Below are positions 12,401 to 60,200 of a DNA stretch of 64,000 nucleotides, piece after piece. Numbering within the stretch: the stretch's first letter is position 1; each line of letters opens with the position of its first letter. The position numbers were made by a program, and so were the translations under genes. A model generated the notes under the pieces. The model saw only the letters and a program-made list of their open reading frames with translations, searched no databases and had not been told where the DNA came from. Origin of the DNA: Oopsacas minuta. Lineage: Eukaryota > Animalia > Porifera. The stretch spans positions 186,001-250,000 of the forward strand of contig JAKMXF010000334.1 of assembly GCA_024704765.1 (NCBI GenBank), in the 5' to 3' direction.

Positions 12401-15400
12401 ATGGGAAATGTCAAAATGTTCATTTCCCAACGAGTGTCGCTATATGTAGGTTCCACACGGAGCAGAATGTTGCGTAAATAATATTTATGTGGGAAATTGT
12501 CATGTCAGAGGAGATAGACCACGTACTATATCCATGCAATAAAGTTGCATAGAATAACCGACAATCTAAGTTTGTATCGTGCGTAGTGGGGTTAAGAGAT
12601 CATGATGCTTCTATTCTAGAGATATTCATCTAATAATACGTCTTACAATCCACCCTTTTGTGAATATGTATTGAAATAACGTTTGTAAACATTGCTGAAT
12701 TACATATTTCATGCAAGGTTTTGCTTTAGGTTGAACTAACTAGTAAATACCTCAGTAGTCTTGCTATAGTATATTCAGCATTACCTTTTCCAGAGGGTAT
12801 CTACCTGTCTGATCCTCTATTCTGCTATATTTTATTGTGTTCATTTCTCTAAGTCCGTACTCACAGGATAGTGATCCTGTTGAAAGACGTTTCCATAAAT
12901 ATAATCATGGATTACTTTTTAAGTTGTCATGAACTATTCTCAGAATTCCACAATTCATCGGCACCAAAATATCTGTGTTCTAAAAACTCACGGTTCTAAT
13001 TGTAAATTTTTTAATCTTAGGCACCTATCGATGGTTGTCGCCAGGTTCCCCAGTCCGGCGAATAGTTGGGAATGTATGGATGAATTGATAAGAATTTCCC
13101 CAAGTGTGGGGGCATTTGACATCTAGACTAATAACTTTACATAATTAAAGATCTTTTTGTTCCTAGTTAGCCACAAGCAGGGTTTCATACAGGTCTCAGG
13201 ACCATCCGTTTAGGAATGGATTCTATTTTATGCGCCTGTAGGCGCGCCACATACACCTAGATAATACCCTGGCCACAAGGATACCCTACATATAAAGATA
13301 TGGAGATTTTACATTTGAAATGCCCCAGGGGTAGTAAATTTGAAAAATCCTCGTATCAAATCCCCACCTGTGACCCATATAAGCCCGGACTTGGGGAGGT
13401 GGTAACAACCTTTGATAGTTGCATTAACAGTACATTTTGGTGCAGAGATACCAACTTTCACGAATGGTGAAACGCTTTGTTAGCATCTATTTGACCAACA
13501 TGCTCATGCCATAATCATGCCAGAAATTCAATGATATTTCAAAACTCATAAAGTAAAATGAATTAATACAAACATACCAATAACATAGCATACAGGTAAA
13601 CCTAAATATGACATACTTCCCAGATGCGGCACAAGCAGTTACTCAGATGCGGAATCTCGGAGGTTTACATGTATGACAAGTCTAAGTCAAAAATCAAAAT
13701 TTTATGGAATAATGATCATCCATTTTGTATGCGTCTACTGATTAAGTTATGGGCCTCAGTCTTCATACTAATCTGTTAAGCTAGCCCTTCGAATACGAAT
13801 ACCATTTACCGAATACTAATCCAATATATTGATTAAATTTGATTGTCAACTTTAAACTTTGAGTCGTAAGTTTTAGTATTTTCAATAATAAATATCCAAT
13901 GTTAATCCAAATTTATTCTACTTTAGAAGATTCAAGTTACGCAGCAGAATCTGAGAAAGATGATGATTTAGAGTGAGTGAAATTATCTATACTATCTATA
14001 CAACTTGTAATATTCTTTGCTCTATTCCAAGGTTGAAACCGATCCAACTGAATATCAGTATTCATGAATACCTGTCAAGCCGAATACAAATACTGATACT
14101 ATTTGGTTCTCTAACCGAATATGAATACTGATACTATTTGGTTCTCTAACCGAATATGAATACTGATACTATTTGGTTCTCTAACCGAATATGAATACTG
14201 ATACTATTCGGTTCTCTAAGTCATGACATTATTTTAACTATGTCCTAGATTATTATTAATTGCGTATTGCCGTATAGATTTGACTCACAAGCATCAATAT
14301 CAGATTCTGAAAATGAAGCAAACGCGAATACAGAAGAGCAGAGAGCTGAACCAAAACCTAAAAAGATAGAAAGATCGAGGAAAGAGAGCAAAAGCAACAG
14401 CAAATCCAAGAAGAAAGAAAAAACAGAGAAATCTTCTAAAGTAAGTTTAGTTTTCTACACAACTGTATGTATATTTGTTTCATTGAAATCATGGTTATAA
14501 TAGTATATATATTGTCACTAATGTGCTGGATTGTTCCTCTAAATTCCCCCGCTGATGAGGTTGGTTTTAATACAAATCATAGTTTCAAATAGTCTCCTGA
14601 TGATGCAGTCGAATCTGGTTAGGTACTAAAGTTCCAGAGTGGGCACTTGTCTACCCAAAATTTATCATTAGTATAGACAATAGAGTGTAGTCTATGACTA
14701 AATAATATCAGTATATTAATTCATAGAAAGCTCTGAAAAAGAGATTTCCCTCACACACAATAAATACGCGAACAATAATTAATATAATGAAATAAAGTCA
14801 GTCAGCAGTGACCTGTAGTTGGAATTAGAATAAGTTGATCCAAATGCTTCTTAGTTCCTTGTAGACCACTACTACCTTTGAGATCCTCAAAGAATAACTC
14901 AATTATTTCCTCTGTTACGTGTGGACACACTACTATGTGATACATATGTCCAAGATGAATATCGCTATGACAAGCAAACAATCCTTTTTAATTATTCCTT
15001 CTGTTAGTGTAGGAATACTAACTATCAGAGAAGCTAGGTAAATAACGTCTCAATATCCATAAATCCTTTCTTGACGACGAAAAAGAGACAAACAATTGAG
15101 ATTTAATAATATAGATTTCAAGGTTTCCATATTTTTTAATTAGATGGTGTTTCCGGGGTGGGACCAAATTTCCAATTTCCGTGGACATCACGTATAATAT
15201 GTTGTATCAGTCCCTGCTGTATTAATATTATTCAGATTACTAATTATTTATTAAACACACACAGAGTTAATTATACGAAATTAAATAGCAAATAAATATT
15301 CATATTTGCTATGTACACACACAAAATTATGCAAGCGATTGAACTAGCACGTATATCATTACTGTTCCCTTCTTACAGAATGGATCTCTTATGACAGAAG

Positions 15401-18400
15401 CTATTGGTATAGAACAAATACGTTTATTCTGATTTACACTGTCCCATGGTGTTTCATAGAAATTCCTTGCCAACTCAATTTCATCTCCGTGGAAGTAGAG
15501 TGACTCATCTTCTCTGTCCTGGTTTACTAGCATTACGATTGATTTTCCTCTGAAGGGCCATTTCGCATTTTTATCCCCCCCGGATTTTAGTGTGCTTACT
15601 TTAACATGCGCTTTAGCATCTTCTATACTTATAGAACATTTGAATATGTAGCCTTCCAATGAGAATGTTGGACTCTCATATAAAGTAGTGTCTGAAGCAA
15701 ATCCTGATATTTTCCAGCGTAATCTTGAACCTGCGAGTGATGTCATGAATACGTTATTCAAATGACGTATTTTGTTACTAAGCTTATTATTCTGTTTTGT
15801 GAGTTCTTCAATCTGTGCAGACCTGTGTTTATCAACTTCTTCAAGTTGACATATCCTCTCCATGATATCAGTCTGTGTCGAGGCTATGTACTCGCTTAAT
15901 AACGCTGTGTGTAATTCATTGTTTATTCTCATATGATCCTTCACTTCATCTTTCTTCAGTTGAATGGCACTACAGCCATATTGTGCGTATGTACAAGGCA
16001 ATGACCTTTCTGAGCATTCAGTTTTTAAGTGGAACTCCATGTTAATTTTCTTCACCTGCATGCCGCATGAATTACAATCCATTTTTGTGTTTTCACATTC
16101 ATTAAGATGCTGTATTAACAGGGTAGGGCTTACCAGTTTATCACAGAATTCACAATTTACAGGTCTCATAGTACATTCAATGTTGATGTGTTGCAAAGCG
16201 CTTTTTCTCTGATGAATTACTCCACAGTCTAGAGAACATTCTATCTGATAGCAAGGACATTCATCTACATGCTGCGAAATTTCACATATCTTCCCATTCC
16301 AATCACATCCTCTTTTTTGTAATGGACATTTCACGTTAAGTTCTAGAACTGATTTCCTTGCAGCAACTAAGTTCTGATAAGGATTTTGTGGATTTTCAAT
16401 ACACATAAAGCAAACCTGTAATAAACCTTCATTCGTAGAGCAAGCCTCCCGCATAATGCCTTTACACTTGTTACAGGCTAAAAAGCTATCTTCTATTGGT
16501 GTGAGCTGTGTAGTGAGTAGCTCCCTCTTGAACCCATTGAATCCGTCCTCTGTTTGTATGTAGAGGAGTTTCTCTCTTACATCAGGTTTTTGCATTCAAG
16601 CTAAGAATAAAATACAATAGATTGTATCATATACTATTTTAATGCCTGTAATACAAGTACAGGTAAACCATATAAGGCGTATCTTATTCCACCGAATTCC
16701 TATGGATTAATACACTGTACCTAACCTCCGAAATGAGGCACAAGCGGTCTCCCGATAAAGCTACACGTTGGATTATTACCTGTACTGATAATTTACAATA
16801 TACAAATACTAAAAGCTCTTAAACTCAGTCAATACTGCTTATATCGTTAAACAAAACCCATCCGAAGTGCGAATTTTGAAATTTGCGGACAGTCTAGTAC
16901 CTTCGCGAAACAATGTAGATAACAATCACATGTAAGTAGAATTTGATGTGTCCGAATTTTAAAACCCAAATTAGTATCAAATTTACGGGTCTGACTGAAT
17001 GGTGGAATTTCTGAATTTTCGTAGAAATGACTGATTGGTGAAAGTAGTGGAATTTCTAAAAGTGACTGAATAGTTTAAAATTGCTTATAATATGCTGCTG
17101 TTATTCATTTGTGCTTGTTTTGTTACCCCATTACCTAATTCCATGTGGTTCCACAATTTATATTATAAGCAATTTTTCACCATTCAGTCAGACCCAAATT
17201 TACTGATGCTATATCCTGAGATTATTGTTAAAATATTAATTTTGTGTATATTACCTTTTTTAATATTCATTATCTATACCTATGACATTTGTGAATATAT
17301 CCAAGGTAAGCTTACCATGGCCTTACCTTTGTAGGTTATAATACCGTACATATGGGTAACTTGTATGTAATTACCCAGGACAATGATTCTCAACTAGTCT
17401 GCTTTGGAATACTTGTATATTTTAAGGGCTGCTAGGATTGGCTTAGAATACTTAAATCACACTAGCGCTTTATTGATATACCTCTGAGCAGCTGCAATTT
17501 ATAATCGCTATCTACACTTCGTGCCTTGGATTGGGCTTATAATAAATGTACAGTCGACAACTGTTAATTCGAATTCCAATTCGTATTAGTCGGACAAATG
17601 ACAACATGCTAACTCGAACAAATGTAGCGCCCCCAACAATATTATTTATTTGAATATATATACCGAATCTGATTTTCACACTTTGGAATTGATCATATGT
17701 AAATTTATTTGGTTTTTTAGTGTGCTTTCTATATACTACTATTTTTGAATACAGTATATGGTAAATAAATAGAAATTTACGTGAGACTTGTTCTTAAATC
17801 CCACATTTACTGTATGTGATTTTGAAATTCCAACAATATGACACTTACGTCATAATTTGTCTGTGTAAATTTCGTCCAAGACTCGAATCTGTCCGGCTTA
17901 GGCCTAAATATCCTTAAAACATCCCCGGGCCTTCCATTTTCTTCAATCAATTCAATTTATACAAATTACTTACATGCATATTTACACATTTGTAGAAAGC
18001 GAAGAAGAAGAAAGACCCTGACTGCCCTAAAAAGCCAGTGAGTGCATACATGATTTGGTTCAATGAACAGAGGAAGAACATAATGGAGAAATATGAGACT
18101 AATTTTATTGAGACTAGTAAAAAAGGAGGTGAACTGTGGGGCTCTATGACTGGAGACGAGAAACAGGTAATTGAATATAAAATTATACTGAGTAATACCA
18201 TTCAAGGAGCTATCATAAATATCTCCTACGTAATTATTCAGGCATTTACTACTCATGTGACGCTTGTGGCACAAGTTACTTAAATATAACTTTTTCAATA
18301 TACTCAAAATGTTTTATGATTTGAAGTTTGATACAACACCTTACAAACCAAGTAAGAATAACAAATCATATGTTCTTACAGGTTTATGTGAAAAAATATG

Positions 18401-33785: not shown

Positions 33786-34841
33786 ATGGCGAATACATAT
33801 TTCGATACCCCTTTAAACCTTTCTGAAACATTACTAGTTAGTCTATGTCGTGGGAGCTATGGGGGATTCGATCCAGATTTATTTGCTGAAAAGTATGAAG
33901 ATCATATATGCGCTATTTGTTTGGGTATTTTACGTAATCCAGTCTGTACTAAATGCAAGCATTTTTTCTGTGAATCATGTTTTGGCTGCATAAGGGATAA
34001 TGAGGACTGTGCTAGATGTCCGATAGATAGAAACAAGTTATTGCCTCATGAGTACTATATAGCCCGGACAACGCAGAAAGAGATAGAATCCAAACTTATT
34101 CTCAAGTGCCCATGGTCCAGTGAAAGTTGTAAATGGTCAGGGAATTTAAAACAGCTTGTCACGCATATAGAAGATGATTGTGAATACGCGTTTATTAAGT
34201 GTAGAGAGTGTCCAAAAGAGATTCGACGAAAATTTATGGACAAACACGAGATAGAACATTGGAGAAGTAGATGTAGAAACCTATTGAGTTCTATTAAAAA
34301 CCGCACAAGTCCAGTATGGTTTATACAGAAAGATACATGGACAATATTAAACCAATCAAGAAAAGTTCTAGATAATTTCGTAACTCCATTTTACTGGGCT
34401 ATACCGGGTGTGGAATCTCTAATAGGGAGAAGATGTATACTGTTCTCACCCCCTATTCTAACTGATTACTACGGATACAGGTATCAAGTACGGATTAATA
34501 TGGGTGGATACGGGGATGGATATGGGCGGTTTATTTCTGCATATTTGTACCTCATGAATGGCCCGAATGATAAATCACTGCGATGGCCATTTGCAGCTAA
34601 TTTTCAGCTGACTTTGTTGGATCAACGTTTGAAGGAAGAAGATAGAGGTCAACATTTCGCGAAAACATTACAATTCCTTTCGCACCCAGCTCTATTCAAC
34701 TCTCCATTAGCAGGAGAGTCTAGGAATACTGGACTTGGTTGGGGACGATTTGCATCGTTTCAATTGTTACAGGATAATTACTGTGTTGAGGATACGATTG
34801 TAGTTTGTGTGGAATTAACGACGAAGTTTCAACCTTCTTAA
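33786..34841 (+). CDS. RING-TRAF zinc finger-MATH protein (TRAF4/6-like), single exon
   Basis: Intact C3HC4 RING (CAICLGILRNPVCTKCKHFFCESC..CPID), CPWSSESCKWSG, MATH (LFSPPILTDYYGYRYQVRINMGG, ISAYLYLMNGPNDKSLRWPF, GLGWGRF). Confidence 0.92.
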   Translation: MANTYFDTPLNLSETLLVSLCRGSYGGFDPDLFAEKYEDHICAICLGILRNPVCTKCKHFFCESCFGCIRDNEDCARCPIDRNKLLPHEYYIARTTQKEIESKLILKCPWSSESCKWSGNLKQLVTHIEDDCEYAFIKCRECPKEIRRKFMDKHEIEHWRSRCRNLLSSIKNRTSPVWFIQKDTWTILNQSRKVLDNFVTPFYWAIPGVESLIGRRCILFSPPILTDYYGYRYQVRINMGGYGDGYGRFISAYLYLMNGPNDKSLRWPFAANFQLTLLDQRLKEEDRGQHFAKTLQFLSHPALFNSPLAGESRNTGLGWGRFASFQLLQDNYCVEDTIVVCVELTTKFQPS

Positions 34842-35908: not shown

Positions 35909-37729
35909 TCAGATCATAAAGAGAGAGAAGACAAATGCCAGAAATATAACTGACATTGTCACTTGGAGGGAACTGCCATCAGAAGTACCAAAAGTACCCT
36001 CGATACAAATTGCTGGGTCACAAGGGGAACCTTCTAGAGTAAATGAATTCGCATTACTGGCACCTTTGACAGAAACGTAAATTGAGTATGTTACATTTTC
36101 AGTATCTCTTCTTGTAATGTTCACATCTTCTGAGAGAGGAGATATCACAAGTTCTTTGTATGTATCAGAGGATGAAATCTCTAAATCATTGTCATACTCG
36201 TATGGATGCGGAGTAACTCTAGAAGCATACAAGAAAGTCAGTCCTATTTCGTCAACAACTACTATCATTAAGTTCATATTATCTTGAACTTCGAATTGAT
36301 AATATTGGAATTCATCCTGCAAGACAACTCCTATAATTATAGAATTTATCGGGATGGGTTGTGATTCATAACACGTAGTAGCTGTGAGGGTACTTGCAAA
36401 ATCACTCAAATCTGTAAATGAATCAAGTATATAAATATGAGGAGGGGGAGAGGGAGAAGCTATCACATTCAATTGATTAATGTCATACCCCCCGATGCCT
36501 ACGACATAGATTATGATATTACTATCTCTGACATTCATAGCTGGGATTTCTACCGAATCGCCAGCTTTACCATCGGTCAGGACAATTAAAATCTTTGGAA
36601 GCCCCAGTGTATCTGGACGGAGGCCATTTAGTTCAGTAAATTGATCACCTTGTGTTAAGTTTAACGCACTTCCTAATTGTGTACCTCCCCCGATCTTTGT
36701 GATGTTATCGATAGCGTTGTCATAATCCTCTTTACTCTTATAAGATGATAAATAGAAGACGGTTGTATAGAAGGAACCGAAAAGAGAAAGTCCAAATCGA
36801 GTTCCATCCTCATCAGCTAGGTCTTCATCAGAAAAAGCGTTGATAATTCGGCTAATAAAATCTAAAGCAAGCGAGAAATCACTACTGCTGATACTCCCAG
36901 ATTGATCCAAAAGAAATACTACATCCACAGATCGAGTGCATACCTCTAGGACAGCACGGATGATATCTGCTTCATTATTTCTTCTCTTAAGGTCACCCCT
37001 CTGCTGAATTTCGGGGTTATTATAGAAATTCTCTAACTCATTAATAGCACCCTCCCAATCATTTTTGATGACTAAATTCCAGAACTTAGGGTACTCAGGG
37101 TAAGCTTCCGGCGTACCAAACTGAAACCATACGTCAGAAATAGCAGTCCTTATACCTCTAGGAAGTGATGCGAATTCCGGAAGGCCTGATCCGCGCTCAG
37201 CGTTATAAGTCGTTTGTACACTTTCCACAATGAGGTCTTTCACCTTAGTAGTCAGGTCTTTCGCTTCATCTAATGTCAAGGCTAAAGGATTTTCAATAAT
37301 CGCACAAGCAGCATCGTTCTGTGTAAGACCGAAGTATGGTTCTAATTGATTAATTACTGTTGCTTCTACACTAATGTCAGTGAAGTACTCACCGTTCTTA
37401 GATCCTAGATCCACTCCTCCTCCGATAGTAACACCACTCGTTCCTAGAACTTCTCCGTCATCAGAGTTGATTGGCACATATCCGCATTTAGTAAGTCCTT
37501 CGTGACATGTAACGAATTCGTTGTATATGAGAGGTAGGTCAGTGGATGTACCCTCTGGTATTCCAGCTTTCCAGCTAGTTGGACAAGAAAGCATCTCCAA
37601 TTTACAATCCGTTGGAACACGGGGATTATTGATGTACAGACGAGGTTTGTAAGGGGTAGTACAAACGAGTGCTGTGCATACAGCAAGCATAGAGAAGAAG
37701 GTGTAGAAGAAAATCTTCAACATTGCCAA
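35909..37729 (-). CDS. Signal peptide + pesticin-like (T4-lysozyme fold) muramidase + VWA + PPC-like beta-sandwich + putative GPI signal, single exon
   Basis: 606 aa; HEG..GYVP..SGVTIGGGVDLG pesticin-type motif; VWA with MIDAS (FLLDQSGS, GGTQLG, LTDG); C-terminal GTSDGSS + hydrophobic tail with no cytoplasmic segment. Confidence 0.85.
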   Translation of the reverse strand: MAMLKIFFYTFFSMLAVCTALVCTTPYKPRLYINNPRVPTDCKLEMLSCPTSWKAGIPEGTSTDLPLIYNEFVTCHEGLTKCGYVPINSDDGEVLGTSGVTIGGGVDLGSKNGEYFTDISVEATVINQLEPYFGLTQNDAACAIIENPLALTLDEAKDLTTKVKDLIVESVQTTYNAERGSGLPEFASLPRGIRTAISDVWFQFGTPEAYPEYPKFWNLVIKNDWEGAINELENFYNNPEIQQRGDLKRRNNEADIIRAVLEVCTRSVDVVFLLDQSGSISSSDFSLALDFISRIINAFSDEDLADEDGTRFGLSLFGSFYTTVFYLSSYKSKEDYDNAIDNITKIGGGTQLGSALNLTQGDQFTELNGLRPDTLGLPKILIVLTDGKAGDSVEIPAMNVRDSNIIIYVVGIGGYDINQLNVIASPSPPPHIYILDSFTDLSDFASTLTATTCYESQPIPINSIIIGVVLQDEFQYYQFEVQDNMNLMIVVVDEIGLTFLYASRVTPHPYEYDNDLEISSSDTYKELVISPLSEDVNITRRDTENVTYSIYVSVKGASNANSFTLEGSPCDPAICIEGTFGTSDGSSLQVTMSVIFLAFVFSLFMI

Positions 37730-44828: not shown

Positions 44829-45449
44829 ATGGCAAAAAGGAAAGGGTTGTCACTAGATGATAAGAGACAGAAAATAATGCAGATATTTGCAGAAAAACAG
44901 GAATTCTTTCAACTGAAAGAAATAGAAGTTTTGGCCAAGAAAGAAAAAGGCCTGAATCCAATGCAAGTGAAAGATTTAGTCCAGTCATTAGTTGATGACG
45001 ATATGATAGATATGGAAAAGGTTGGTATATCTAGTTACTACTGGGCTTTCAGGAGTAAATTGTCAGCTAAAAAGAAATTGAAGTTAGACACTGTGAAAGG
45101 AAACCTGAAAGAATTGGAAGAAAAGGAAAAAATTTTGAAATCAAGGTTAGAATCATCAAAGATTAGTCGTGAAGAGTGTGAAGAGAGAGATAAAATATCG
45201 GAAGAAATCGAAGAGAAGTCTCTGAAGGTAGCTTCTATTCAGAAAGAATTGGAAGAATTGAAAGATTCTGATCCATCTTTATGGGAAGAGAGGGAGGAAG
45301 AGATAAAATTAGCTCTGACAGCAGCTAACAGATGGACTGACAATATATTCTCTCTGGTGAGTTGGTGTAAATCCAAGTTCAATATGGAAGAGAAGAGTTT
45401 AAATGACGCATTTGGTATTCCTGAAGATTTGGATTACGTAGAGAACTGA
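44829..45449 (+). CDS. MND1: Meiotic nuclear division protein 1, single exon
   Basis: 206 aa; KGLSLDDKRQKI, FFQLKEIE..KEKG..MQVKDLVQSLVDDDM, EKVGISSYYWAF, AANRWTDNIF, FGIPEDLDY. Confidence 0.96.
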   Translation: MAKRKGLSLDDKRQKIMQIFAEKQEFFQLKEIEVLAKKEKGLNPMQVKDLVQSLVDDDMIDMEKVGISSYYWAFRSKLSAKKKLKLDTVKGNLKELEEKEKILKSRLESSKISREECEERDKISEEIEEKSLKVASIQKELEELKDSDPSLWEEREEEIKLALTAANRWTDNIFSLVSWCKSKFNMEEKSLNDAFGIPEDLDYVEN

Positions 45450-46930: not shown

Positions 46931-47819
46931 NNNNNNNNNNNNNNNNNNNNNNNNNNNNNNNNNNNNNNNNNNNNNNNNNNNNNNNNNNNNNNNNNNNNNN
47001 NNNNNNNNNNNNNNNNNNNNNNNNNNNNNNNNNNNNNNNNNNNNNNNNNNNNNNNNNNNNNNNNNNNNNNNNNNNNNNNNNNNNNNNNNNNNNNNNNNNN
47101 NNNNNNNNNNNNNNNNNNNNNNNNNNNNNNNNNNNNNNNNNNNNNNNNNNNNNNNNNNNNNNNNNNNNNNNNNNNNNNNNNNNNNNNNNNNNNNNNNNNN
47201 NNNNNNNNNNNNNNNNNNNNNNNNNNNNNNNNNNNNNNNNNNNNNNNNNNNNNNNNNNNNNNNNNNNNNNNNNNNNNNNNNNNNNNNNNNNNNNNNNNNN
47301 NNNNNNNNNNNNNNNNNNNNNNNNNNNNNNNNNNNNNNNNNNNNNNNNNNNNNNNNNNNNNNNNNNNNNNNNNNNNNNNNNNNNNNNNNNNNNNNNNNNN
47401 NNNNNNNNNNNNNNNNNNNNNNNNNNNNNNNNNNNNNNNNNNNNNNNNNNNNNNNNNNNNNNNNNNNNNNNNNNNNNNNNNNNNNNNNNNNNNNNNNNNN
47501 NNNNNNNNNNNNNNNNNNNNNNNNNNNNNNNNNNNNNNNNNNNNNNNNNNNNNNNNNNNNNNNNNNNNNNNNNNNNNNNNNNNNNNNNNNNNNNNNNNNN
47601 NNNNNNNNNNNNNNNNNNNNNNNNNNNNNNNNNNNNNNNNNNNNNNNNNNNNNNNNNNNNNNNNNNNNNNNNNNNNNNNNNNNNNNNNNNNNNNNNNNNN
47701 NNNNNNNNNNNNNNNNNNNNNNNNNNNNNNNNNNNNNNNNNNNNNNNNNNNNNNNNNNNNNNNNNNNNNNNNNNNNNNNNNNNNNNNNNNNNNNNNNNNN
47801 NNNNNNNNNNNNNNNNNNN
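46931..47819. other. Assembly gap (N run)
   Basis: Run of N. Confidence 1.
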
Positions 47820-48671
47820 TGTGAGATTACTGTAGATCGTGTAGTAGACGCACACAAGGTAGAGACTGACAAGCATAAGTTTCGATTAGTCAGCATAACT
47901 TCAGATAATGGAGAATTACAATAACCTATTATCCACAGTTCTTAATCTTGTTGTTATTCCATGGAGTTGTATAATCACACTTATAATTTGAACTTTATAT
48001 ATTTTTCCAGTAATTGAACCGTGTCAGGACCCTCAGAGACCAATACAGTAGGCTCTCAATGATAAGTGTACCGTTGATATGTCTTACTCCTTACCGGCAA
48101 GGTATCCGATAAATATGGTTTTTCCCAAAATTGGAATCTATTATAGTACTCGAAAACCCTGACTATCCGTTCAAATGAAATTCCCAGCATCTTTTTGAAA
48201 TATGTTCCAAAATGTGTGAAAAATAGATTGATCATATGATATATCTGTGAATTTAAATACCCGCGGTGCAAATCTCCGACCCAAAATCTCTCTCTATATA
48301 TATCTAGTAGAATTCGGTTATTGACAATATTATTTTATTGTCAACCTATTTTCAAAATGTTCCCTTATTACGGCTGCGCTGATGGACGGAAGTCGCACAT
48401 CATAGATGTCATTAGGACATCTGATTCTCCCTATAGGGCCTGTGCTAAAATAGAACGTGTTAACAGTGTATAATATAATATCGGATACCGACAATTCGCA
48501 CCACGGCAATTCGCACCTAATTTGATTGGCCTACTGTATCCACTTGCCCAGCCTCAACAGATGCTCCTGGACTTTGAGAAGGGCCCGATTACCAGCTTTG
48601 AGCATGTCTGGCCTAACACAGTAGTGAAGTGCTGCTTCTTCCACCTCACACAGAATATCTGGCGACATGTG

Positions 48672-49201
48672 NNNNNNNNNNNNNNNNNNNNNNNNNNNNN
48701 NNNNNNNNNNNNNNNNNNNNNNNNNNNNNNNNNNNNNNNNNNNNNNNNNNNNNNNNNNNNNNNNNNNNNNNNNNNNNNNNNNNNNNNNNNNNNNNNNNNN
48801 NNNNNNNNNNNNNNNNNNNNNNNNNNNNNNNNNNNNNNNNNNNNNNNNNNNNNNNNNNNNNNNNNNNNNNNNNNNNNNNNNNNNNNNNNNNNNNNNNNNN
48901 NNNNNNNNNNNNNNNNNNNNNNNNNNNNNNNNNNNNNNNNNNNNNNNNNNNNNNNNNNNNNNNNNNNNNNNNNNNNNNNNNNNNNNNNNNNNNNNNNNNN
49001 NNNNNNNNNNNNNNNNNNNNNNNNNNNNNNNNNNNNNNNNNNNNNNNNNNNNNNNNNNNNNNNNNNNNNNNNNNNNNNNNNNNNNNNNNNNNNNNNNNNN
49101 NNNNNNNNNNNNNNNNNNNNNNNNNNNNNNNNNNNNNNNNNNNNNNNNNNNNNNNNNNNNNNNNNNNNNNNNNNNNNNNNNNNNNNNNNNNNNNNNNNNN
49201 N
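48672..49201. other. Assembly gap (N run) inside the left arm of the palindromic element
   Basis: Run of N. Confidence 1.
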
Positions 49202-49277
49202 CCGATTAACATGTTAATCTAAAGGATTATCTAGCCCTCAAATACATTGATTAGAGATAATCCTTTAGATTAACATG

Positions 49278-49988
49278 TTAATCGGCTCCCAGACTGAAAT
49301 GATGTGCTACACCCTGCAAGAACTCCATTTTAGAACGATCTTGAGAATAATATTCACGAACTAGAGTCTTCAACGCTTCCTCACTCTGTTGGGACCGCCT
49401 TCGCTTGGTTGGTGGCTTGCCAACGAGGTAGTTAGTATGCCGCACCTCCACTAGGCCCTGCTCACGCTTGAGGGCTAGGAGGAACTTCCATATGGTGGGG
49501 TGATGGCAGTCGACAGTGGCATTGAAGCTGTGGTGCCATGCCTCCACGGCGTTGGTTGTACGGGGGAGCCCGAAGGGCGTGCTGAGGTGGTAGTTCCACA
49601 GGTCGATGGGGAACGTCGCCGCTACATGGTATCCACTGGCTAGCGTGCGACCGATATACGTCCTCTCAAAGTAGTCGACTAGTTCGCCTATCTCAGACGT
49701 AAGGGGGAGGTCCATTGCCACTTGATCAAACAGATCGTGTACGTCTGCTGGTCGGGCAAAAGCAAGGGCTGGTATCCTCCGGATGCACATAGCCAACTCT
49801 TCGTCATGTGTGTAGGCAGACTGCAGCCCTACAGACTGCACATGTCGCCAGATATTCTGTGTGAGGTGGAAGAAGCAGCACTTCACTACTGTGTTAGGCC
49901 AGACATGCTCAAAGCTGGTAATCGGGCCCTTCTCAAAGTCCAGGAGCATCTGTTGAGGCTGGGCAAGTGGATACAGTAGGCCAATCAA
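49278..49988 (-). pseudogene. 3' half of a MULE (Mutator) transposase; mirrored copy begins at 48522 on +
   Basis: LLDFE, KCCFFHLTQNIWR (CxxH), YFERTYIG, RTTNAVEAWH, HPTIWKFL. No N-terminal half and no ATG at the start; the open frame begins directly after the 15-mer array. Confidence 0.85.
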
Positions 49989-49992
49989 ATTA

Positions 49993-50143
49993 GGTGCGAA
50001 TTGTCGTGGTGCGAATTGTCGCTGGTGCGAATTGTCGCGGTGCGAATTGTCGTGGTGCGAATTGTCGCGGTGCGAATTGTCGTGGTGCGAATTGTCGCGG
50101 TGCGAATTGTCGTGGTGCGAATTGTCGTGGTGCGAATTGTCGG
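49993..50143. repeat. Subterminal tandem array, 10 x 15-bp GGTGCGAATTGTCGY (2 units in the mirrored arm at about 48487-48517)
   Basis: Read directly; one unit has an extra base. Confidence 0.95.
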
Positions 50144-50301
50144 TATTCCGTATAATATGTATACGAATAGAAAATCTGTTTTGGAGAAAAGTCCCGATTG
50201 CAAGTGTTAAGCTTATTACGTATGCTAACCGAACTCTATTGTATATTATTCAGTGGATAACAGGCATCTATTGTATCCCGCTTCTATATTAGATTATTCT
50301 C

Positions 50302-53249
50302 ATGTCGAAAGCAAAACCCATTCAAGTGGTAATACTCTCTTCGTTTTCTCTTCCTTCCAATACTGCATCAAGTGAAGATGTCCTGAGTCAGTGGGATCGT
50401 CACCATAAACATTATATTCTATCGCTAAGACAGTATTTATCTCAGAACCTGGATAGAAGTAATCAAATATTTTTAGATTTAGAATTGAAAGATAATCCGA
50501 ATTGGCATATTAATCTAATCGGTCCTGAATCTACAGTGATAATTATATTGAGTAGCGGGCTATTGGAATTCTATAATAAACCTGATAGACGGCCAATTAC
50601 TGATAATGATAGACACACTTCTCTTGTTGTAAATCTTATCAAAGGGCTGGATGCGAATCATAATTGTACCAAAAAATACTTTTTCGTGATATTTGAAGAG
50701 AATTTACTCTCGATAATTCCAGTTATATGGCAAGGTTCAATTTGTCACGTGAAATCTGAGACTGATCATAGAAAGGTAATGACAATAATAAAGGATGAAC
50801 CTCAAAGCCAGCAGACATTTTCCACTTCCTTTGAACCCCTATCAATGATATACAATGATGATCAGGCTAAATTTATCAATTATTGGAAGGCAATCTATAG
50901 AGAAGACAAATCACATACAAATTTGAGTATGTATTATATTGAGCAGAAACTCACAAAGCAAGTAACTGATGATTCTCCAGATAATGTAAGTAATACCGGT
51001 GGGAGTGATGAGTTGATGACTGATCAGCTGTATGGTGATGCAAATGACTTGATGAATAAAATGATTGTAATTCAAGGAGCTAATGGATGTGGGAAGTCTG
51101 CACTCGCACAGATGCTCTGCCATCGATGGGGTAAGGGAGAAAGTTTGAAAATGTTCAGAGCTCTTGTTTTCATTGAACTAAATGAGGATAATATTCAAAA
51201 GCCTATGATAGAATTGATGAGATTCATTCCACACGAATCTGCCGCCAAGAAGGAAATTATTCTTAACGGGCTATCTGCAACTCAGGATGTACTGTTCATA
51301 TTGGATGTTGAAAACTATCCTTGGAGAAAATGCAAAAATTTTAAGTCCACTGAAATCGGACAGCTATTACTTCACCAAAGAACAGAAAGTCTACTCGTAT
51401 TAACGAATCAACTTGCCAGTAACGAAGATGATAAACGAATAATCGATGAAGCTGATATCATCTATGAATTGCAGAGTTTTGATCAAGATCAACTCAAACA
51501 TTTTTTTTGGAAAAGGACTTGTCCTATGGATATGAAATGTTCAGAAATATTTCAAGAATTGTGTAAGCTTCCCCTCTATGCCGTGATGATCCCCAGGAGT
51601 GAGGAAGTTGTTAAACATACTAATCTCACCGCGTTTTGTAAGGGCATTGTTGTCCAAATTCTGGCTAAAACCTTCCCAAAAGTTTGTTTAGAATCACTCG
51701 AACAATTTCTGAAGGAAAATAATACATTTAAGAACATCTGTAATTTAGCTTGGGACCTTATAAATGACCAAACTAACACAATACCAATAACTGATGTAAG
51801 AGCTAAAAATATCAACAGACAGGAAGGTGGATTGGGATTCCTGGATTTTATCACCAAACCGAATGACAAAAAAATTTGCACAGATTTCCTAGTTTTCCGT
51901 CTGAAGACGATTCAACATTTTTTGGCAGCTCTTCATTTCGTATATACAGTATGCACCCCTGAAATAGGGAGGGACTTTCTATTGACGTTAATGTCAGACC
52001 ATTCTATTCACAATGTTTGGAGATTTGTGACAGGTTTATTGAATGATAAGAAAAAAATACATTCTTTATTGAAGTCTCTCGGGTCCAATCATGCACCTCC
52101 CAAGCTTCTCTACGTACAAGCCATTTCTGAGAGTGAGATGAAATTCGATGAAATGGACACAGAGCTCAAAGAGATAGTATCTACCTGGATAAATTCTTTT
52201 AATTGGGAGAAGATTTCTTTATATCCTAGCGATTGTTTGGCTATCATAAAAACCCTCAATTACCTCGGAGAAAAGGAAAAGCGAAGGATTTTAGAAGAAG
52301 TTAAAGAGCTAAATTTTTCAAATTGTAATCTGGGTAATGAAGGTATGTTTCATTAAATTGAATGTCTGTCTATGCTCACAAATGTTAAGCTTATTAATAT
52401 GGGAGGAAATCCAAACTTTTTGAATCCTTTATCCAGGAATGGTTGCGTTGGATATTTGAAAGAAATACTAAAGAATAATTCTCGTACTTTAAAGCGATTA
52501 TATCTTGGATCTTCTGGCCTAAACTTTACAGGATTGCGTATTTTGAAGCCGACCCTCCTTAAGTTGACAGATCTAACTGAATTAGATTTATCTAGAAATA
52601 GCCATCTGGATTCTAAGGGTTGGAGCTTATTTGCAGATATTCTAAAGAACCTCAAAAACAAAGAACTCTTGAAACTATTCTTAGCTGATAACAATATTGA
52701 TTCTAACAGTTTCATAAGTATCCTAGAACAACTGAAGAAGTACCCGTTTCTTAAATATTTGAATTTTTGTGGCAATCACATAACTTCAAAAATAATGGAC
52801 AGTTTGATAGAAGTTCTAATGAGAATTAACATTAGGAGATTATTCCTTTCAAACTGCAGAATCAATAACAGTGTATTTACAATTCTATTGAATTTTATCC
52901 GTGAGAATGAAGCAAAATTAGATTCTCTTGTTTCCCTCAGTTTAGCCTTGAATGAATTTGATAACAATATCGTTGGAAAATGATGGATTCTCTGAAACTT
53001 ACCAAAAAGTTGCAAACTTTAGTTTTGAACCACAACAAAATTGGCGATAATTCGTCAATGCAGATTCTTTCTGATAGCTTGAAAGACATGCCTGCTATTG
53101 GTGCTATATGCGTATCTCATTGTGGGATCCAAGAAGAGGGAGCGATTATATTATGCAGTAATTCTCATAATGTTTCTGTGGATTTAAGGAAAAATAATAT
53201 TAGGAAGGATTCTGAAAAGTTTAAAAAGTTTGGTCATACTCTAATATAG
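50302..53249 (+). CDS. NLR-type protein: SEFIR-like domain + NACHT + LRR; probable intron 52343-52436 and two apparent 1-bp deletions in the LRR region
   Basis: NACHT: IVIQGANGCGKS..HRWGKG..FRALVFIEL, LFILD, FRLKTIQHFLAAL, VWRFVTGLL; ribonuclease-inhibitor-type LRRs (ELNFSNCNLGNEG, LTELDLSRN, LFLADNNI, LQTLVLNHNKIG); N-terminal about 165 aa with SEFIR-like pattern. Confidence 0.85.
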
Positions 53250-54279
53250 TTAATACGAAATTCTTCAGTTTGTACATTTATTTCTTTTTCCTACGTTTTT
53301 ATTAATTATCCCCGATGTGGGTTGTTGATTATTTTATCAAACATTTTATTCGATTTCTGCATGCAACGTATTATGCTCTATGTTTTATTTGTTGTTATAT
53401 TCTATCTTTTCTAGTTTCATTCAAGTTTGCCTTTTCATGTATGTAGAATTTATTAGTGTATATACAGTGTCAACAGGATAAGCCAACTGTTCCTGTTTTC
53501 GGATATGTATTGAGGTAAGGTCCCACTACGAGCTTTAATTGGCTCGCTTTTTGTAGTCCACTAATTCCAGTCTAATGTAACTGCTTCCCGCGATGCCTCG
53601 CTAAATTCCTACAGTCGAAATCGGATTAATTTTGATTATGTATGTGTGTACAACTGTACGTATTGTACAAATGAATTAGTGCATAAAATTGTGGCGTAAT
53701 ACACTGTTTGGTGGATTATCGGGGTGATACTGTATCCTGTAATTTGATACTGGGGGATGTTTGGGATCTTAAAGGTTAGCAGAGTTGAGTCTCCCTCACT
53801 ATTATTGTTATACTACTTTTCCAATAGAGATTAAGAGATGAAATACAAGAGAGGCACGTATTAATGTCCCAATATTATAGTAACAATAAACCTCAGGTTA
53901 TTTATTAACAATTATATTATTGATTTCTCTTGACTTTACTGCAATGGTTCTCAGTAAAAGTTATTTTGAGAATTATGCACCGTTTAGCCTTTATAGTTAT
54001 ACCATAACGTTAGCATGTACGAATAACGTATGACAATATCGCATCCATCCAGGTACCAGGTGACCAGCTTTTGACTATAAAACTAATGGGCCAATAATTC
54101 CAGCTCCAGGTTACATAATAACCAGCATTCACTCAAACGTAGTGGATAGGTTTTTATGACACAAAGCTTGAATATTCAAAGATGTTACTCAATATTAAAT
54201 TTATTATACTTGTATATTTTGTTTTATTACTTTATCAAATCTACTTATAGCAAGAGTCATACATAGAGCAGGATTCTAG

Positions 54280-57200
54280 ATGGATAGAGTGAAATCTTAC
54301 TTCACATCGCTATTCAAGAGTAAAAGTACAGACACAGCTGATCCGTTTAACATATTAGTTTTGTGTAATGAGTGTCTAAGTCCTGTTCATTCACCTGACC
54401 ACTACCATAGATGTGTTGAATGTCTTGAAGTTTATGATCTTTGTAATATTTGTATGACCCAAGGTAAAGGAAGCCAACACACAGAAATCCATGGCAAAGA
54501 ACATTACTTCTACTCTGAAAACAGACAATTAAATGATATACTCCAGGGTCTTAGTCAGACCAAATCTATAGAATCGCTATTCTTCTCTGCTTTTAAGGAA
54601 TTTTCTACTAAACCTGCATTTGGTAGCTATGATGTTCAGAAAAAAAAGTTCGTTTATATAACATTTGGAGAAGTGTTCAAAGAGATTGAGAGGTTCGCTT
54701 CTGGATTGTTAGCAATGGGAATCGTACGATGCAATTCTAAAGGCATTATTCCACATCAAATATTCGCTATTTGTTCAATTTCTCGAGCAGAATTTTTCAT
54801 AGCAGACGTGGCATTAATGTTCTTAGGTATAACATCTGCTCCTATTACAGCTTCTGATGATATAATTAATTTCAGAGCTATTCTCTTTCAGACAGAATCT
54901 GAGACTATTATATGTTCTAAACAAGTGCTATCTAAGGCGAGTAATCTTACTGGAGGTTTATAGCTTTATATAAAGCGCGAATACAATCGGATTCGAATAT
55001 GAATTTTCCGTAAAACAAATACGTATCTACTTTTTCAAAAATTTGTAAAATACAGTAAAGTTACAGAACAGTACGAGTGTTGGAGTAAGCATCGCGATGT
55101 AGCATCGAGTAATGAGCACAATTTAACACTTAATAACTGTCAATTTGCTACCTATTCACCTGGAACTTGTTGAGTACCTTCATTTTGTTTGGGGTTTTCT
55201 CATATAAATAATCTATCTGTATCAAACCTAATCATGCCACAATGACATTGCAAACTTTGTAATGCGAAATCTCCATAAAGGAATACAGAGTTATTAAGTG
55301 TTTAAGTTGTGCTTATTGCTCGCTGCTAACACCACGCTCATCAGAACAGTAGACTCTGCTTCATATAGCCATGTATGACTACCCTATTGTCCGAATACAG
55401 ATTGGCCTAGAGCAGCCAGATATAATCTTAACTGACTAAGAAATATTTATCTCATATTAATGAGAAACATTGTGCACATGCACTTTTCTGCCATGCAGGT
55501 TTAGCCATATCATAACTGTCTTTTTAATTGATAGGTTTTGACAGCTGTCAGTAATGAGAATGGAGGGAGTAAAGTCAGATATGTTATTTGTATGGATGAG
55601 ACCGGAGATACAGTATTATCTCATAAGTCTGTAAATCTGTTGGGTTGGAAACAAGTATGTGATGATGGAGAACAGCACTTAGTGGACATGGATTCATTCA
55701 AAAGTCAGTTGAATAAGAAAATTTCTGTATATATTCTGATGCATTCGAGTCTAGATAATTTTTCATTATACATCAGTGATCAGTAAAGACACCGAAATTT
55801 AACAAACATCCTTAAAATCCTTCAGAAATTTCATTATTGGCACATTTGAGGCCATTTTTCTAGAAAGAATTAGATTTGGAAAGTCAAACATTTCTGACCG
55901 CGCTCTATATGCGAACATTTATTGCCAAAGATTTTATAGAAAACCAATGGTATAGGGGGATAGGGAATTGTCAGGGCTATTGTATTAGCCTGTAGCTCCA
56001 AAATATAATGAGTTATGACAGTTTAAAGTTAGAGGATAGTGGAAAATTTGCTCATGTCAACTTGAAACGGTCATAACTCCGTCAATTTTGGAGCTCCATA
56101 GTAGGTTCATTCTCTAGTTGCTTTCCCAATCAAAACTATCGTTTTTCACTAATAAATATCAGCAAATAGTGCGAGATCAGTATTTTTTTAAATCAAAAAA
56201 TGTTTGGCATTTGGATTAAAATCCGCCAATAATGAAAATTTTGACTGATTTTAAGGATACCTGTCAAAGTTCGGTGATTTGCTGGTGCATACGTATCGAA
56301 TTTTATGGAATTGAATATTTTCCTATGGAAAACGATTAAGCCTGTATCCATTCATTTAATGATACAAGGATCATTCATGACTTTCAACTTTATCATTTGT
56401 TTAGCATCTAATGATAGTATTTTCACTTTGATATATACAAGTGGTACTACTGGTACCCCTAAGGGTTGCATATTCACCAGACAGTCATACTATGAATTGA
56501 TAAAAGGAACTCTGTCAATATCTTCTATCTGTGAGGTATGGTTAGCTTTTCATCCTCCTTCTCACCAAATGGAGAGGAGATCTGTTCTTTGTAACATGTG
56601 TTCTGGAATGAGAGTAGCGTTTTACAGGTAAATTTAATGTCCTCTCTGTTAGTACGCTCGATCCTGCGAAATGTAACTGTCCAGATAGATATTAAAATCG
56701 GTATATAACTAACATAAGGTATATACAGGATAGCTTTTAATATAATTTTGGATACTGAGTTTCCTATATTATACTAAGCACAAGAATTCTAGGCATACCA
56801 TACTAATATTCGTATTGTTTATCAGAATTATACGTATTATTCACTTAATTCTTATGCCGTAGAACCACTATAATTAGGGGAGGTCGGGGCGGCGAATCTC
56901 CTGGTAACCCTCCATCTTACCTTTATAATTTCGAGTGCAAATGTCTTACCAGAGATTTTTGTAGTCAATTTGTGTTACCACTTCCTCCAACGATTGTCTT
57001 TAAATGAATTTGATTATTATAATATGCCCTAAGGTCGTTGGTTGAATTGAAAATTTGTAATAATTTTTCTTCTGAGAAACACAACATTTCAATTCGTCAT
57101 AGCGAAAATATGTGGTTTTTTGCAGGTTTAGCACAAAAATTGATTATTCAAGAAAACTGATCGTAGATTTCCCCACTTATAGAGGTAAATTTCATCTAAG

Positions 57201-60200
57201 CAGGTGATCTAGTGCATCTGACGGGTCGTTTGCTATCTTGGATGCTCTGAAGGCTCTTGACTGATATGTGTTTTTGCACATCTCCCGCGGAGGGTGGTAG
57301 GACTGGTTGGCGGGATTGCTGTGTTATGGGCATTGGCGTAGCTGCAACAGGATTTTTGAGGGGGGCGCAGTCTCTAAAATATATCCAGTTTCCCACCATC
57401 CCTTGGTAAAATCATATTCAATAATTTTTGGAGGGGTCTACCGAGAAATTTGGGGGGTCAGGTCCCCCAGAGGTCCCCGGCGCTACACCATGGTCGTTAC
57501 AGGTTTGGCAGTTGTGGTTTTTGAATGTGTCGAGTAGGAGGGAAGACGGAAGGGCACCTAACCCACCTTCCCTAAATGAGAAGGAGTTACTTCTTTTAGT
57601 AGTTCCTGATTCCTGGATGGTGACTCGTCAGACCTCCATATTGATTTGGTGGTGTGTTGGGAGTGTTGTCAGTTTCTGCGTTGCATTGAGCGGTCCTTTC
57701 TTTGGGCATGTTTTATTAGAGGTTGAACTGCCGAAGTGCTTCCTTTCGTTCTTTGCTGTCCTGTCCCTTCCGCATTTAGCACAGATTGCAATTGCTTTGC
57801 AGACAGAAACTAGCTGAGAGTAGATGTTTGTTTGTTGATTTGTTTCCTTAATGCTAGTGGGAGTGTTTTTGAGTGCTCTTCTAGTGATTTAAACCGGGGT
57901 GGAATTGAAGTGTGTCTGTGTACTTTTTTCTGTTGTTGTTAGAATGGCGTTTGTAGTCAGATATTTGGCACAGGGATATTGGGTTGGGACAATAAGCTGC
58001 AAGATGAGGATTTTCTTGGGTTTTGCAGCTATTAGCAGTCGTTCACTTACTGATGCAGCATAGCTGTGTAGTTTTGGTCCCGTTTTCCTCTCTATGGGGC
58101 TAAATAATTCGCTATTGCGGATTTCTGTTTGTAGTAGGGTTGTGAGAAAGTTTCGGGCTATGGTATTTGTGTCTAAAGTGGAGGGCCTGCATTAGTGTTC
58201 TGTACGTGTGTGAGGGGAATTCTGGGAGGTTTAGTAGTGGTAGATAATTCTTTTGTAAAGTTGTTTTATTTTTGTTCCTTATTGTTCTTGGCTTTTGTCA
58301 CATACTGTATTCGTCGGGATGTCCAGTTCTAATTGTTCTAGTGTCGCGGCTGCAAGCAGCCTGATATAATATGTTTGAATTGCATGCGGTACAGAACATA
58401 CTAAATTATCAATTGCTTAGGAGATTGAGAGTTTCTGTGGAAATGTAAGCTTGTTTGGTTGTGGGTGTTCCAAGTAGAAGTATTCGTCACTGTTTAGGAT
58501 CTTGTATGCGTATGGAGGGCAGGTACGAGGGAGGTTAGTAAGGTAGCTACCATTGGTGGTTGCTGGGTCTGCTTGTGGGGTGGAGTTTGCAGGTGGTGTT
58601 GTAGGGGTGGCTATTGGTGGATCGTTTGGAGGTTTAGAGCTTGTAGGTTGTGAGGGTACATCAGGTCCTTGTGTCCCAGTCGTTATGCTGAAGTTTGATA
58701 TATTGGGAAACTCGTCGAAGAATTTAGAAAGCCGTGGCGATCTGTTAATTGGCGAGCCCGTTCTTGAGTTTGAAGGCTCGTTGGGTGTAGGGACATTTAG
58801 CAATGATCTCCTGATTTGTTCACTGGTGAGGTATTGTGCAGCTTTGGAGATCTGTAGTTTGCAGCTCCACTGGGAAGAATACTATGTCGTTTTCTTCTCG
58901 GGACCTGAAACTATTATACATACAGGGACATTTACTATATCAGAACGGCAATAATGTCTATACCCGACGGAATTCTGTTCGAAGAAATATGTGTGTTTCA
59001 GTTGGAAACAATTCGAAAACACTGCCTTAGGGAATCTCCCTATAGATACTGCACTAAAATGGAGTTTAGCATATAGATGATAAATACTTATTTGAAAGGA
59101 TAATTATATATTTCTTAGAGGAGACATGGGCTGTATCATGGAGGACATCTCTCTAGTAAGACCAACTTTGTTGGCCTGTACCCCCAGATTCTGGTCCAGT
59201 CTATATCAACATTACAGAATAATGGTGGATAAAGAGTACAGTTCTATATGTGAATCTTCTCTACAAAACTCAGAGAATGATATAGATGGAGTAAGACTAG
59301 CACTAGGAGATGTTCTGAATTCTGAAAATATTCCTATTCATGAAGAGGTGATATATTATTTTGCTATTTAGTCATACTACCTTATTCGATCTAATTCAGG
59401 CGCCATTCTAGGTTAAGCGCCGTCTAGAACCAATCATATTTATTTGGTTCAAAGCAGTGGCGGATTCTTTAAAAAATTCTGGGGAGCAAAATGGAACTTA
59501 TCAGAGCTAGTTTTGGATTTCATTATAGAAGACTACACAGTACGCCTACTAGATACATATAGCCTCACTTAAAGAAGTTAATTATGACCTCCAAAACCAT
59601 CGCTGTCAGCACTGCAACAGTCAAGAGAAGCTTTAGTGCTATGAATAGAATATTAAGTTGGGCTAGATTTAGCCTTGATAGCACTAGAGCAAGTGATTTG
59701 ATGACAATTTCCTTGAGTAGAGAAATTGTGAAAGCAATCAATTTAGATAATGTGTTGGAAAGGTGGATGATGTAAAAGAGGCGCGTGATTCCATTCTAGC
59801 TAATACGCCTTCTTTCTTGTAGAATTTCCAAAAAATTATATTCTTTCTTGTTTACTAATAAATTTCAGTTATTCTAATGTTGAAAACTGGGGGGGGGGGG
59901 CGATTGCCCCCTTGCCCCCCCGAAGAATCCGCTGTTGGTAAAAATATCCAGCCAACAGACTGGTAGTGCAGCTCAGTATTGTGTTTTTTGTTCTTTTCAA
60001 GTGGGCACCCCCCCCCTTGATACACCGTGTAAATTCCGAAATGCACCAGATCCCGACTGATTTTAGGCTCCTATATCTGATATATATTTCAGGATATTCA
60101 ATATTATTCGTCCCCTAATGAACTTCATTTTCTATCCTCAAATCTTGTGGTTAAAACTCTAAATAAATAAATAAATAACCCCCTGTCTAACATTTGAAAA

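Follow-up and report, generated by a model that had tools for sequence, protein, structure and literature searches.

Proteins of the NLR type act as devices for ligand-induced oligomerisation, and they are classified by the N-terminal effector domain, since the downstream pathway depends on it. Architectures that combine a STIR domain with a STAND NTPase are well known in plants and bacteria. Surveys of immune genes in sponges, ctenophores and placozoans tally SEFIR and NACHT domains separately, an 11-genome survey of sponge NLRs distinguishes the classes NLRC, NLRD and NLRX, and the architecture table of D. avara holds no SEFIR-NLR. The nearest precedent comes from fungi (Pezizomycotina), where NLR N-termini 'partially resembled' the SEFIR domain of the TIR clan (PMC9815663). 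In the ACT1 signalosome, a double-stranded SEFIR helix is built on a base of receptor SEFIR domains, and raising the local SEFIR concentration via a flexible linker suffices for ACT1 oligomerisation and then TRAF6 recruitment (bioRxiv 10.64898/2025.12.02.691943). Here we describe a locus of the sponge Oopsacas minuta (assembly GCA_024704765.1, contig JAKMXF010000334.1) that lies at 50302-53249 on the forward strand of a stretch of 64,000 nucleotides (contig positions 186,001 to 250,000, hereafter the window). It is an intronless gene in which a SEFIR-like N-terminal domain is followed by NACHT and by ribonuclease-inhibitor-type leucine-rich repeats (LRRs).

A first reading of the window from its letters (the sequence-only reading) knew of no described animal SEFIR-NACHT-LRR, and we also found no published description of this architecture in animals in the full text of open-access papers. 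In kind it is an NLR with a STIR-clan head. Our explanation as a whole, which we hold at a probability of about 65%, is that the locus belongs to a family of SEFIR-NACHT-LRR proteins, that the window copy has been disabled, and that in the intact proteins clustering of the SEFIR domains would seed Act1-like helical assemblies.

A small NLR family

Judged from its sequence, the encoded protein is a true NACHT-LRR. Its NACHT domain carries Walker A and Walker B motifs, its C-terminal part consists of ribonuclease-inhibitor-type LRRs (about 11 repeats in the ortholog described below), and LRR families were matched by Pfam in both of the downstream open reading frames (ORFs), 52372-52983 and 52980-53249. 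The sequence-only reading had placed NACHT and LRRs behind the N-terminus, and they were found in that order (Table 1); the translation of 50302-52353 contains every N-terminal residue that it quoted.

Six full-length relatives (P0002-P0007) and one fragment of 573 amino acids (P0008) emerged from a word-indexed search of 5.8 billion proteins. The full-length relatives have 981-998 amino acids, are 47-62% identical to the window copy, are each encoded by a single ORF, and come from six different European Nucleotide Archive (ENA) assemblies. When the N-terminal profile was run exhaustively as a hidden Markov model (HMM) against 1.84 billion cluster representatives, it recovered the family itself and only one further protein, P0014 (1046 amino acids as called, about 30% identical, a single ORF from a Logan run), the architecture of which was read from its sequence and a NACHT match. 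The intact relatives thereby number seven (981-1046 amino acids), from seven other data sets. The called start of P0014 (L009 183-3323) is an upstream TTG; the alignment favours a Met 24 codons further in (MNQYSIVILSS), which gives about 1022 amino acids. No poly(A) or leader marking the Logan contigs L002 and L009 as transcripts was seen. The nearest sequence relatives of the NACHT domain are NLRX-type NACHT-LRR proteins, and the closest of these (P0009-P0013) were set aside as ordinary NLRX-type proteins with short unassigned N-termini and without SEFIR.

Ratios of non-synonymous to synonymous substitution (dN/dS, Nei-Gojobori) in the close pairs P0002/P0003 and P0004/5/6, limited to four measurable pairs, were 0.10-0.27 overall and 0.09-0.32 for the N-terminal domain, and lay at 0.1-0.3 in every domain. 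These low ratios indicate that the family encodes real proteins and that the N-terminal domain is under purifying selection, and with such conserved relatives an ORF of 684 amino acids in DNA of 35% GC is far beyond chance. The linker behind the N-terminal domain is the most variable part, with 29-54% identity between members and a predicted local distance difference test score (pLDDT) below 50 in the full-length model.

Both in the window and at the P0002 locus the NLR is followed by the same CAR-like gene, with matching orientation. The first exon of this CAR/NRPS-like gene (54280-54963 in the window; L003 16093-16755) stands in the equivalent place and shows 66% protein identity, and the nearest homolog of the window's Mnd1 (82% identical) also comes from the assembly of P0002. 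The pair of NLR and CAR-like gene is, on this comparison, conserved between species, and P0002 is read as the ortholog by position. At another locus, that of P0004, an mTOR gene lies approximately 4.8 kb downstream of the NLR (L005 13782-14970), a neighbourhood unlike that of the window. Taking the sequence comparisons together, the locus belongs to a small family of animal NLR genes that lack introns, encode about 980 amino acids and are confined to one lineage.

The domain at the N-terminus

Pfam, run on amino acids 1-183 alone, returned SEFIR (PF08357) only, with an E value of 3.8e-4 and 21.2 bits against a gathering cut-off of 23. SEFIR was the only Pfam family matched in six of the seven close members, with 25.1 bits in P0003, above the cut-off, and 21.8, 20.2, 18.1 and 14.0 bits in P0005, P0002, P0004 and P0006, respectively. 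No TIR, TIR_2 or other STIR-clan family was matched in any member at E values up to 1. In this family SEFIR scores above the TIR families, which is the criterion that has been applied to bacterial SEFIR (10.1101/2022.05.11.491447).

An AlphaFold2 model of the domain, based on a seven-sequence alignment, reached a pLDDT of 72.9 and a predicted template modelling score of 0.74. It consists of five strands alternating with helices, and the predicted five-stranded parallel sheet can be superposed on solved SEFIR domains. With Foldseek, the top matches were the IL-17RA/RB/ACT1 assembly (9ot1) and the IL-17RA SEFIR domain (4nux) in the PDB, and a C. elegans ACT1-like protein, IL-17RD/RC and TRAF3IP2 in Swiss-Prot. 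The best structural match was the SEFIR domain of ACT1, which scored 3 Z units above any TIR NADase (VIA-align); chain E of 9ot1 was taken to be ACT1, going by its residue numbering (402-560) and by the constructs given in the paper. A shape search of the ESM Atlas gave SEFIR clusters with TM-scores of 0.67-0.68 over 148 amino acids, and TIR_2-only clusters with 0.54-0.57 over 125-131 amino acids. The cluster neighbours in the AlphaFold database (AFDB) were mostly SEFIR-named entries, and the language-model neighbours were CIKS-like SEFIR clusters (score 0.88), which serve as a lead only. Consistently across methods, the N-terminal 165 or so amino acids are best assigned, from sequence and model, as a divergent SEFIR domain or a SEFIR-like member of the STIR clan. 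The sequence-only reading had called SEFIR, with a plain TIR, a death fold or no assignable domain as the alternatives, and this call stood, with SEFIR structures first in every fold search.

Several points weigh against the assignment and what is built on it. The assignment rests on remote homology: the window copy scores under the gathering cut-off, the N-termini of P0007 and P0014 gave no Pfam match, and profile and single-sequence searches of the domain against the PDB gave only chance-level matches (E about 1). The HMM search of the 1.84 billion representatives (HMMER) gave no match that would link the domain to canonical SEFIR or TIR proteins, nor the domain in any other architecture. 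TM-scores were only 0.5-0.68, with TIR domains close behind. In the full-length AlphaFold2 model of P0002 the NACHT domain was of low confidence with seven sequences, and the model was used for the LRR and helical part only. Finally, because the window copy is broken (see below), function cannot be claimed for that copy. From the sub-threshold score, the two members without a match and the exhaustive search that retrieved no canonical SEFIR protein, it could be argued that the domain belongs only generically to the TIR/STIR superfamily, or is a flavodoxin-like domain specific to the lineage, and that weak scores have produced a spurious SEFIR label. We regard this as quite improbable, as SEFIR came first in five independent kinds of comparison (Pfam HMM, Foldseek, VIA-align, ESM Atlas shape search and language-model features), a TIR family was returned by Pfam for none of the members, and the SEFIR alignments were about 20 residues longer than the TIR alignments.

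Coding state and surroundings of the window copy

In this genome the coding sequence is interrupted, unlike P0002-P0007 and P0014, each of which is a single ORF. The interval holds three consecutive ORFs on the forward strand, namely 50302-52356 (684 amino acids), 52372-52983 in the same frame, and 52980-53249 in a frame shifted by one base. The intact single gene of the sequence-only reading was therefore not upheld, given a confirmed TAA at 52354-52356 that precedes most of the LRRs, as well as a frameshift near 52974-52979. An intron across the TAA was considered and rejected: the sole surrounding GT...AG pair (52343-52389) encloses 47 nt and its splicing would lead to an immediate stop, and in the homologs the frame continues here with Leu.

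Logan contigs of four runs were aligned to 49900-53600, the comparison being one of contigs and not of raw reads. The TAA was carried by contigs spanning 52354-52356 both in run X1 (with a single difference, at 52458) and in run X2 (with zero differences), and the premature stop is real in that sample. With an extra A after 52973 the frame is restored and the length equals that of the homologs (NNIVWKMMDSLK). Contigs with this extra A made up all of the depth in X1 (68.7/68.7), half in X2 (47.4/86.8) and two thirds in X3 (283.7/428.9); the frameshift is accordingly one of two alleles, if it is not an error of the assembly. Further 1-nt deletions, which are polymorphic, were present in other contigs at 52769, 51591 and 51657/8. 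The depth of X3 was 270-480 over the gene and 21-65 in the flanks (approximately ten-fold), while X1 and X2 were flat. By its depth profile alone, X3 looks like RNA, with the locus transcribed. In the X3 contigs the match ends at 50291, which is 11 nt short of the ATG, and their upstream continuation reads AAAAAACTTAC; this break could mark the 5' end of a transcript or a spliced leader.

In each region taken separately, the window copy had diverged from the outgroups no more than P0002/P0003 had, the part behind the stop included, and the LRR sequence after the stop is as conserved as in the orthologs (59-63% identity). In a test for relaxed constraint on the window lineage, dS against the closest relatives was saturated and the regional identities showed no acceleration after the stop, which fits a recent inactivation only. 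The window copy is most likely a recently inactivated allele or pseudogene, in which a recent nonsense mutation was followed by segregating indels, and its predicted product is at best an LRR-less SEFIR-NACHT protein of 684 amino acids. Such a product could still be functional, as a constitutive adaptor, a helper or a regulator that ends at the TAA, and this is compatible with the 684 intact upstream codons, with the kept Walker motifs, with the suggestion of transcription in X3 and with a divergence no greater than that of the relatives in any region. We consider a live copy of this kind rather unlikely. The 1-nt deletions in some contigs fall within the upstream ORF (51591, 51657/8) as well as downstream of it (52769, 52973), as expected for a locus that is losing constraint, the LRRs are kept in all seven relatives, and the conservation of the LRR sequence behind the stop in the window copy points to a recent stop rather than to an established truncation.

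The region is strikingly intron-poor for an animal, with Mnd1, the TRAF genes and the NLR all as single ORFs (Table 1). The named homologs of Mnd1 all belong to animals, at 41-50% identity, and in a Mnd1 tree the window clade stands on a long branch without resolved placement. The two TRAF genes of the window, which lie at a distance of 15-35 kb from the NLR, were missing from the 8 kb on either side of the NLR at the P0002 locus, and their proximity is not evidence. A 15-bp tandem repeat of 9.9 copies (GGTGCGAATTGTCGT) at 49993-50142, 160 bp upstream of the ATG, had 10-100 times the depth of the gene and is hence multi-copy; it is probably the terminus of an adjacent Mutator-like element (MULE) transposon (about 48482-50150) and not a part of the gene. 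Between Mnd1 and the NLR are two runs of N (46931-47819 and 48672-49201; gaps or masked), the second within the MULE palindrome. A stretch of 370 nt at 59560-59912 is 86% identical to loci of another assembly (L007/L008 14038-14400) and is probably a shared transposable element.

Table 1. Features of the NLR locus and neighbouring genes in the window (an asterisk within a protein motif is a stop codon).
Feature	Amino acids	Position	Strand	Remarks
SEFIR-like N-terminal domain	1-165	50302..50796	+	five strands alternating with helices
Linker	166-253	50797..51060	+	lowest conservation in the protein; low-confidence helix prediction
NACHT NTPase domain	254-404	51061..51513	+	Pfam NACHT E 1.3e-12, 48.3 bits, cut-off 26.7
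Walker A		51076-51099	+	GANGCGKS, intact
Walker B-like		51292-51312	+	LFILDVE, intact
NACHT-associated helical and winged-helix region	405-660	51514..52281	+	
Ribonuclease-inhibitor-type LRR region	from about 661	52282..53246	+	interrupted in window copy
Premature in-frame TAA	codon 685	52354..52356	+	NEGMFH*IECLS; Leu in 6/6 close homologs
1-nt frameshift in assembly		52974..52979	+	inside LRR, LALNEFDNNIVGK / MMDSLKLTKKLQTL
Terminal stop TAG		53247..53249	+	matches position of homologs' C-terminus (...HT(L/I)(I/V)*)
zf-TRAF/MATH protein		15327-16595	-	single ORF
RING-MATH TRAF-like protein		33786-34841	+	single ORF; no named relatives at E 1e-8
Pesticin-lysozyme and VWA protein		35909-37729	-	single ORF
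Mnd1		44829-45449	+	intronless

Putative mechanism and known systems

In the intact proteins, sensing of a ligand by the LRRs would release NACHT-driven oligomerisation, and the NACHT oligomer would bring the N-terminal SEFIR domains together. The clustered SEFIR domains would then nucleate the homotypic assembly of SEFIR adaptors, either Act1-like or SEFIR-death proteins, and these adaptors would signal to TRAF/NF-kB or death pathways. The protein would in this way be a cytosolic sensor that feeds straight into SEFIR signalling without an IL-17-type receptor. Since an NLR is a ligand-induced oligomeriser and SEFIR concentration seeds the ACT1 helix, clustered heads that seed adaptors are the most economical reading, and we infer from this a preference for the SEFIR-helix mechanism over cleavage of NAD+.

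The N-terminal domain might otherwise be an enzymatic effector, with oligomerisation of the NLR leading to cleavage of NAD+ or another nucleotide and from there to metabolic arrest or a signal molecule, in the manner of bacterial SEFIR and TIR defence proteins and of SARM1. Bacterial SEFIR defence proteins deplete NAD+ via an N-terminal SEFIR domain, and many of the AFDB and Atlas neighbours are bacterial proteins of about 1000 amino acids with SEFIR at the N-terminus, some with AAA-type ATPase domains. The motif DRH(T/S) at amino acids 103-106 (50608-50619) shows no variation among the eight members, not even in P0014 with its 30% identity; none of the testable SEFIR or TIR motifs accounts for it, and it could be an active or binding site. 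However, the alpha-C position that corresponds to the catalytic Glu of TIR NADases (E89 in the window copy) reads E, E, E, D, D, D, S and D in the eight members, a correspondence judged by sequence and secondary-structure position and not by residue-level superposition. No PADLOC defence model, the bacterial SEFIR model included, matched any of seven members, an NCBIfam scan of the members gave chance-level matches only, and the best structural match, ACT1, has a non-enzymatic SEFIR domain. The variation at alpha-C and the lack of a defence-model match lean against an NADase, which appears improbable.

The SEFIR-helix mechanism would have consequences for how the two kinds of signalling are seen. 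A SEFIR-headed NLR would join two normally separate arms of animal innate immunity, namely cytosolic NACHT sensors and the IL-17R/Act1/TRAF6 axis. That in this early-branching or fast-evolving animal lineage a cytosolic NLR drives SEFIR signalling directly, its NACHT oligomer seeding an Act1-type SEFIR helix (or a SEFIR enzyme) without an IL-17-type receptor, is for now a tentative proposal that we hold as possible but doubtful. If true, SEFIR would be a fourth effector class of animal NLRs beside death-fold, BIR and TIR, and this would suggest that SEFIR signalosomes are older than IL-17 receptors or have an independent origin. As the ACT1 helix is seeded by concentration, the idea is directly testable with a small intronless gene.

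Compared with the SEFIR domains of ACT1/CIKS (TRAF3IP2) and the IL-17 receptors, the window family shows only 13-19% identity. In these proteins SEFIR is C-terminal to a receptor ectodomain or a U-box adaptor, whereas in the window family it is N-terminal to NACHT-LRR, and no SEFEX-type extension or TRAF-binding motif was identified. The fungal NLR N-termini that partially resemble SEFIR are alike in position, and no sequence relationship between them and the window family was detected by HMM search. In plant TIR-NLRs and in bacterial TIR/SEFIR-STAND defence proteins, as in the window family, a STIR-superfamily domain is N-terminal to a STAND NTPase and a repeat sensor, and bacterial N-terminal SEFIR proteins of about 1000 amino acids are structural neighbours of the domain. 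The plant and bacterial systems have NB-ARC or another STAND module and a catalytic Glu, whereas the window family has NACHT, a variable candidate Glu position and no PADLOC match.

The window family is like other animal NLRs, both the NLRC, NLRD and NLRX proteins of sponges and cnidarians and the vertebrate NLRP3, NOD2 and NLRC4, in having NACHT, helical domains and ribonuclease-inhibitor-type LRRs. Unlike in these, the N-terminus is SEFIR-like and not CARD, DEATH, DED, PYD or BIR. Because the SEFIR score is sub-threshold, standard pipelines would file the window family as NLRX, and part of the large NLRX class of early-branching animals, which has no recognised N-terminal domain, may conceal effector domains that are recognisable but score below threshold.

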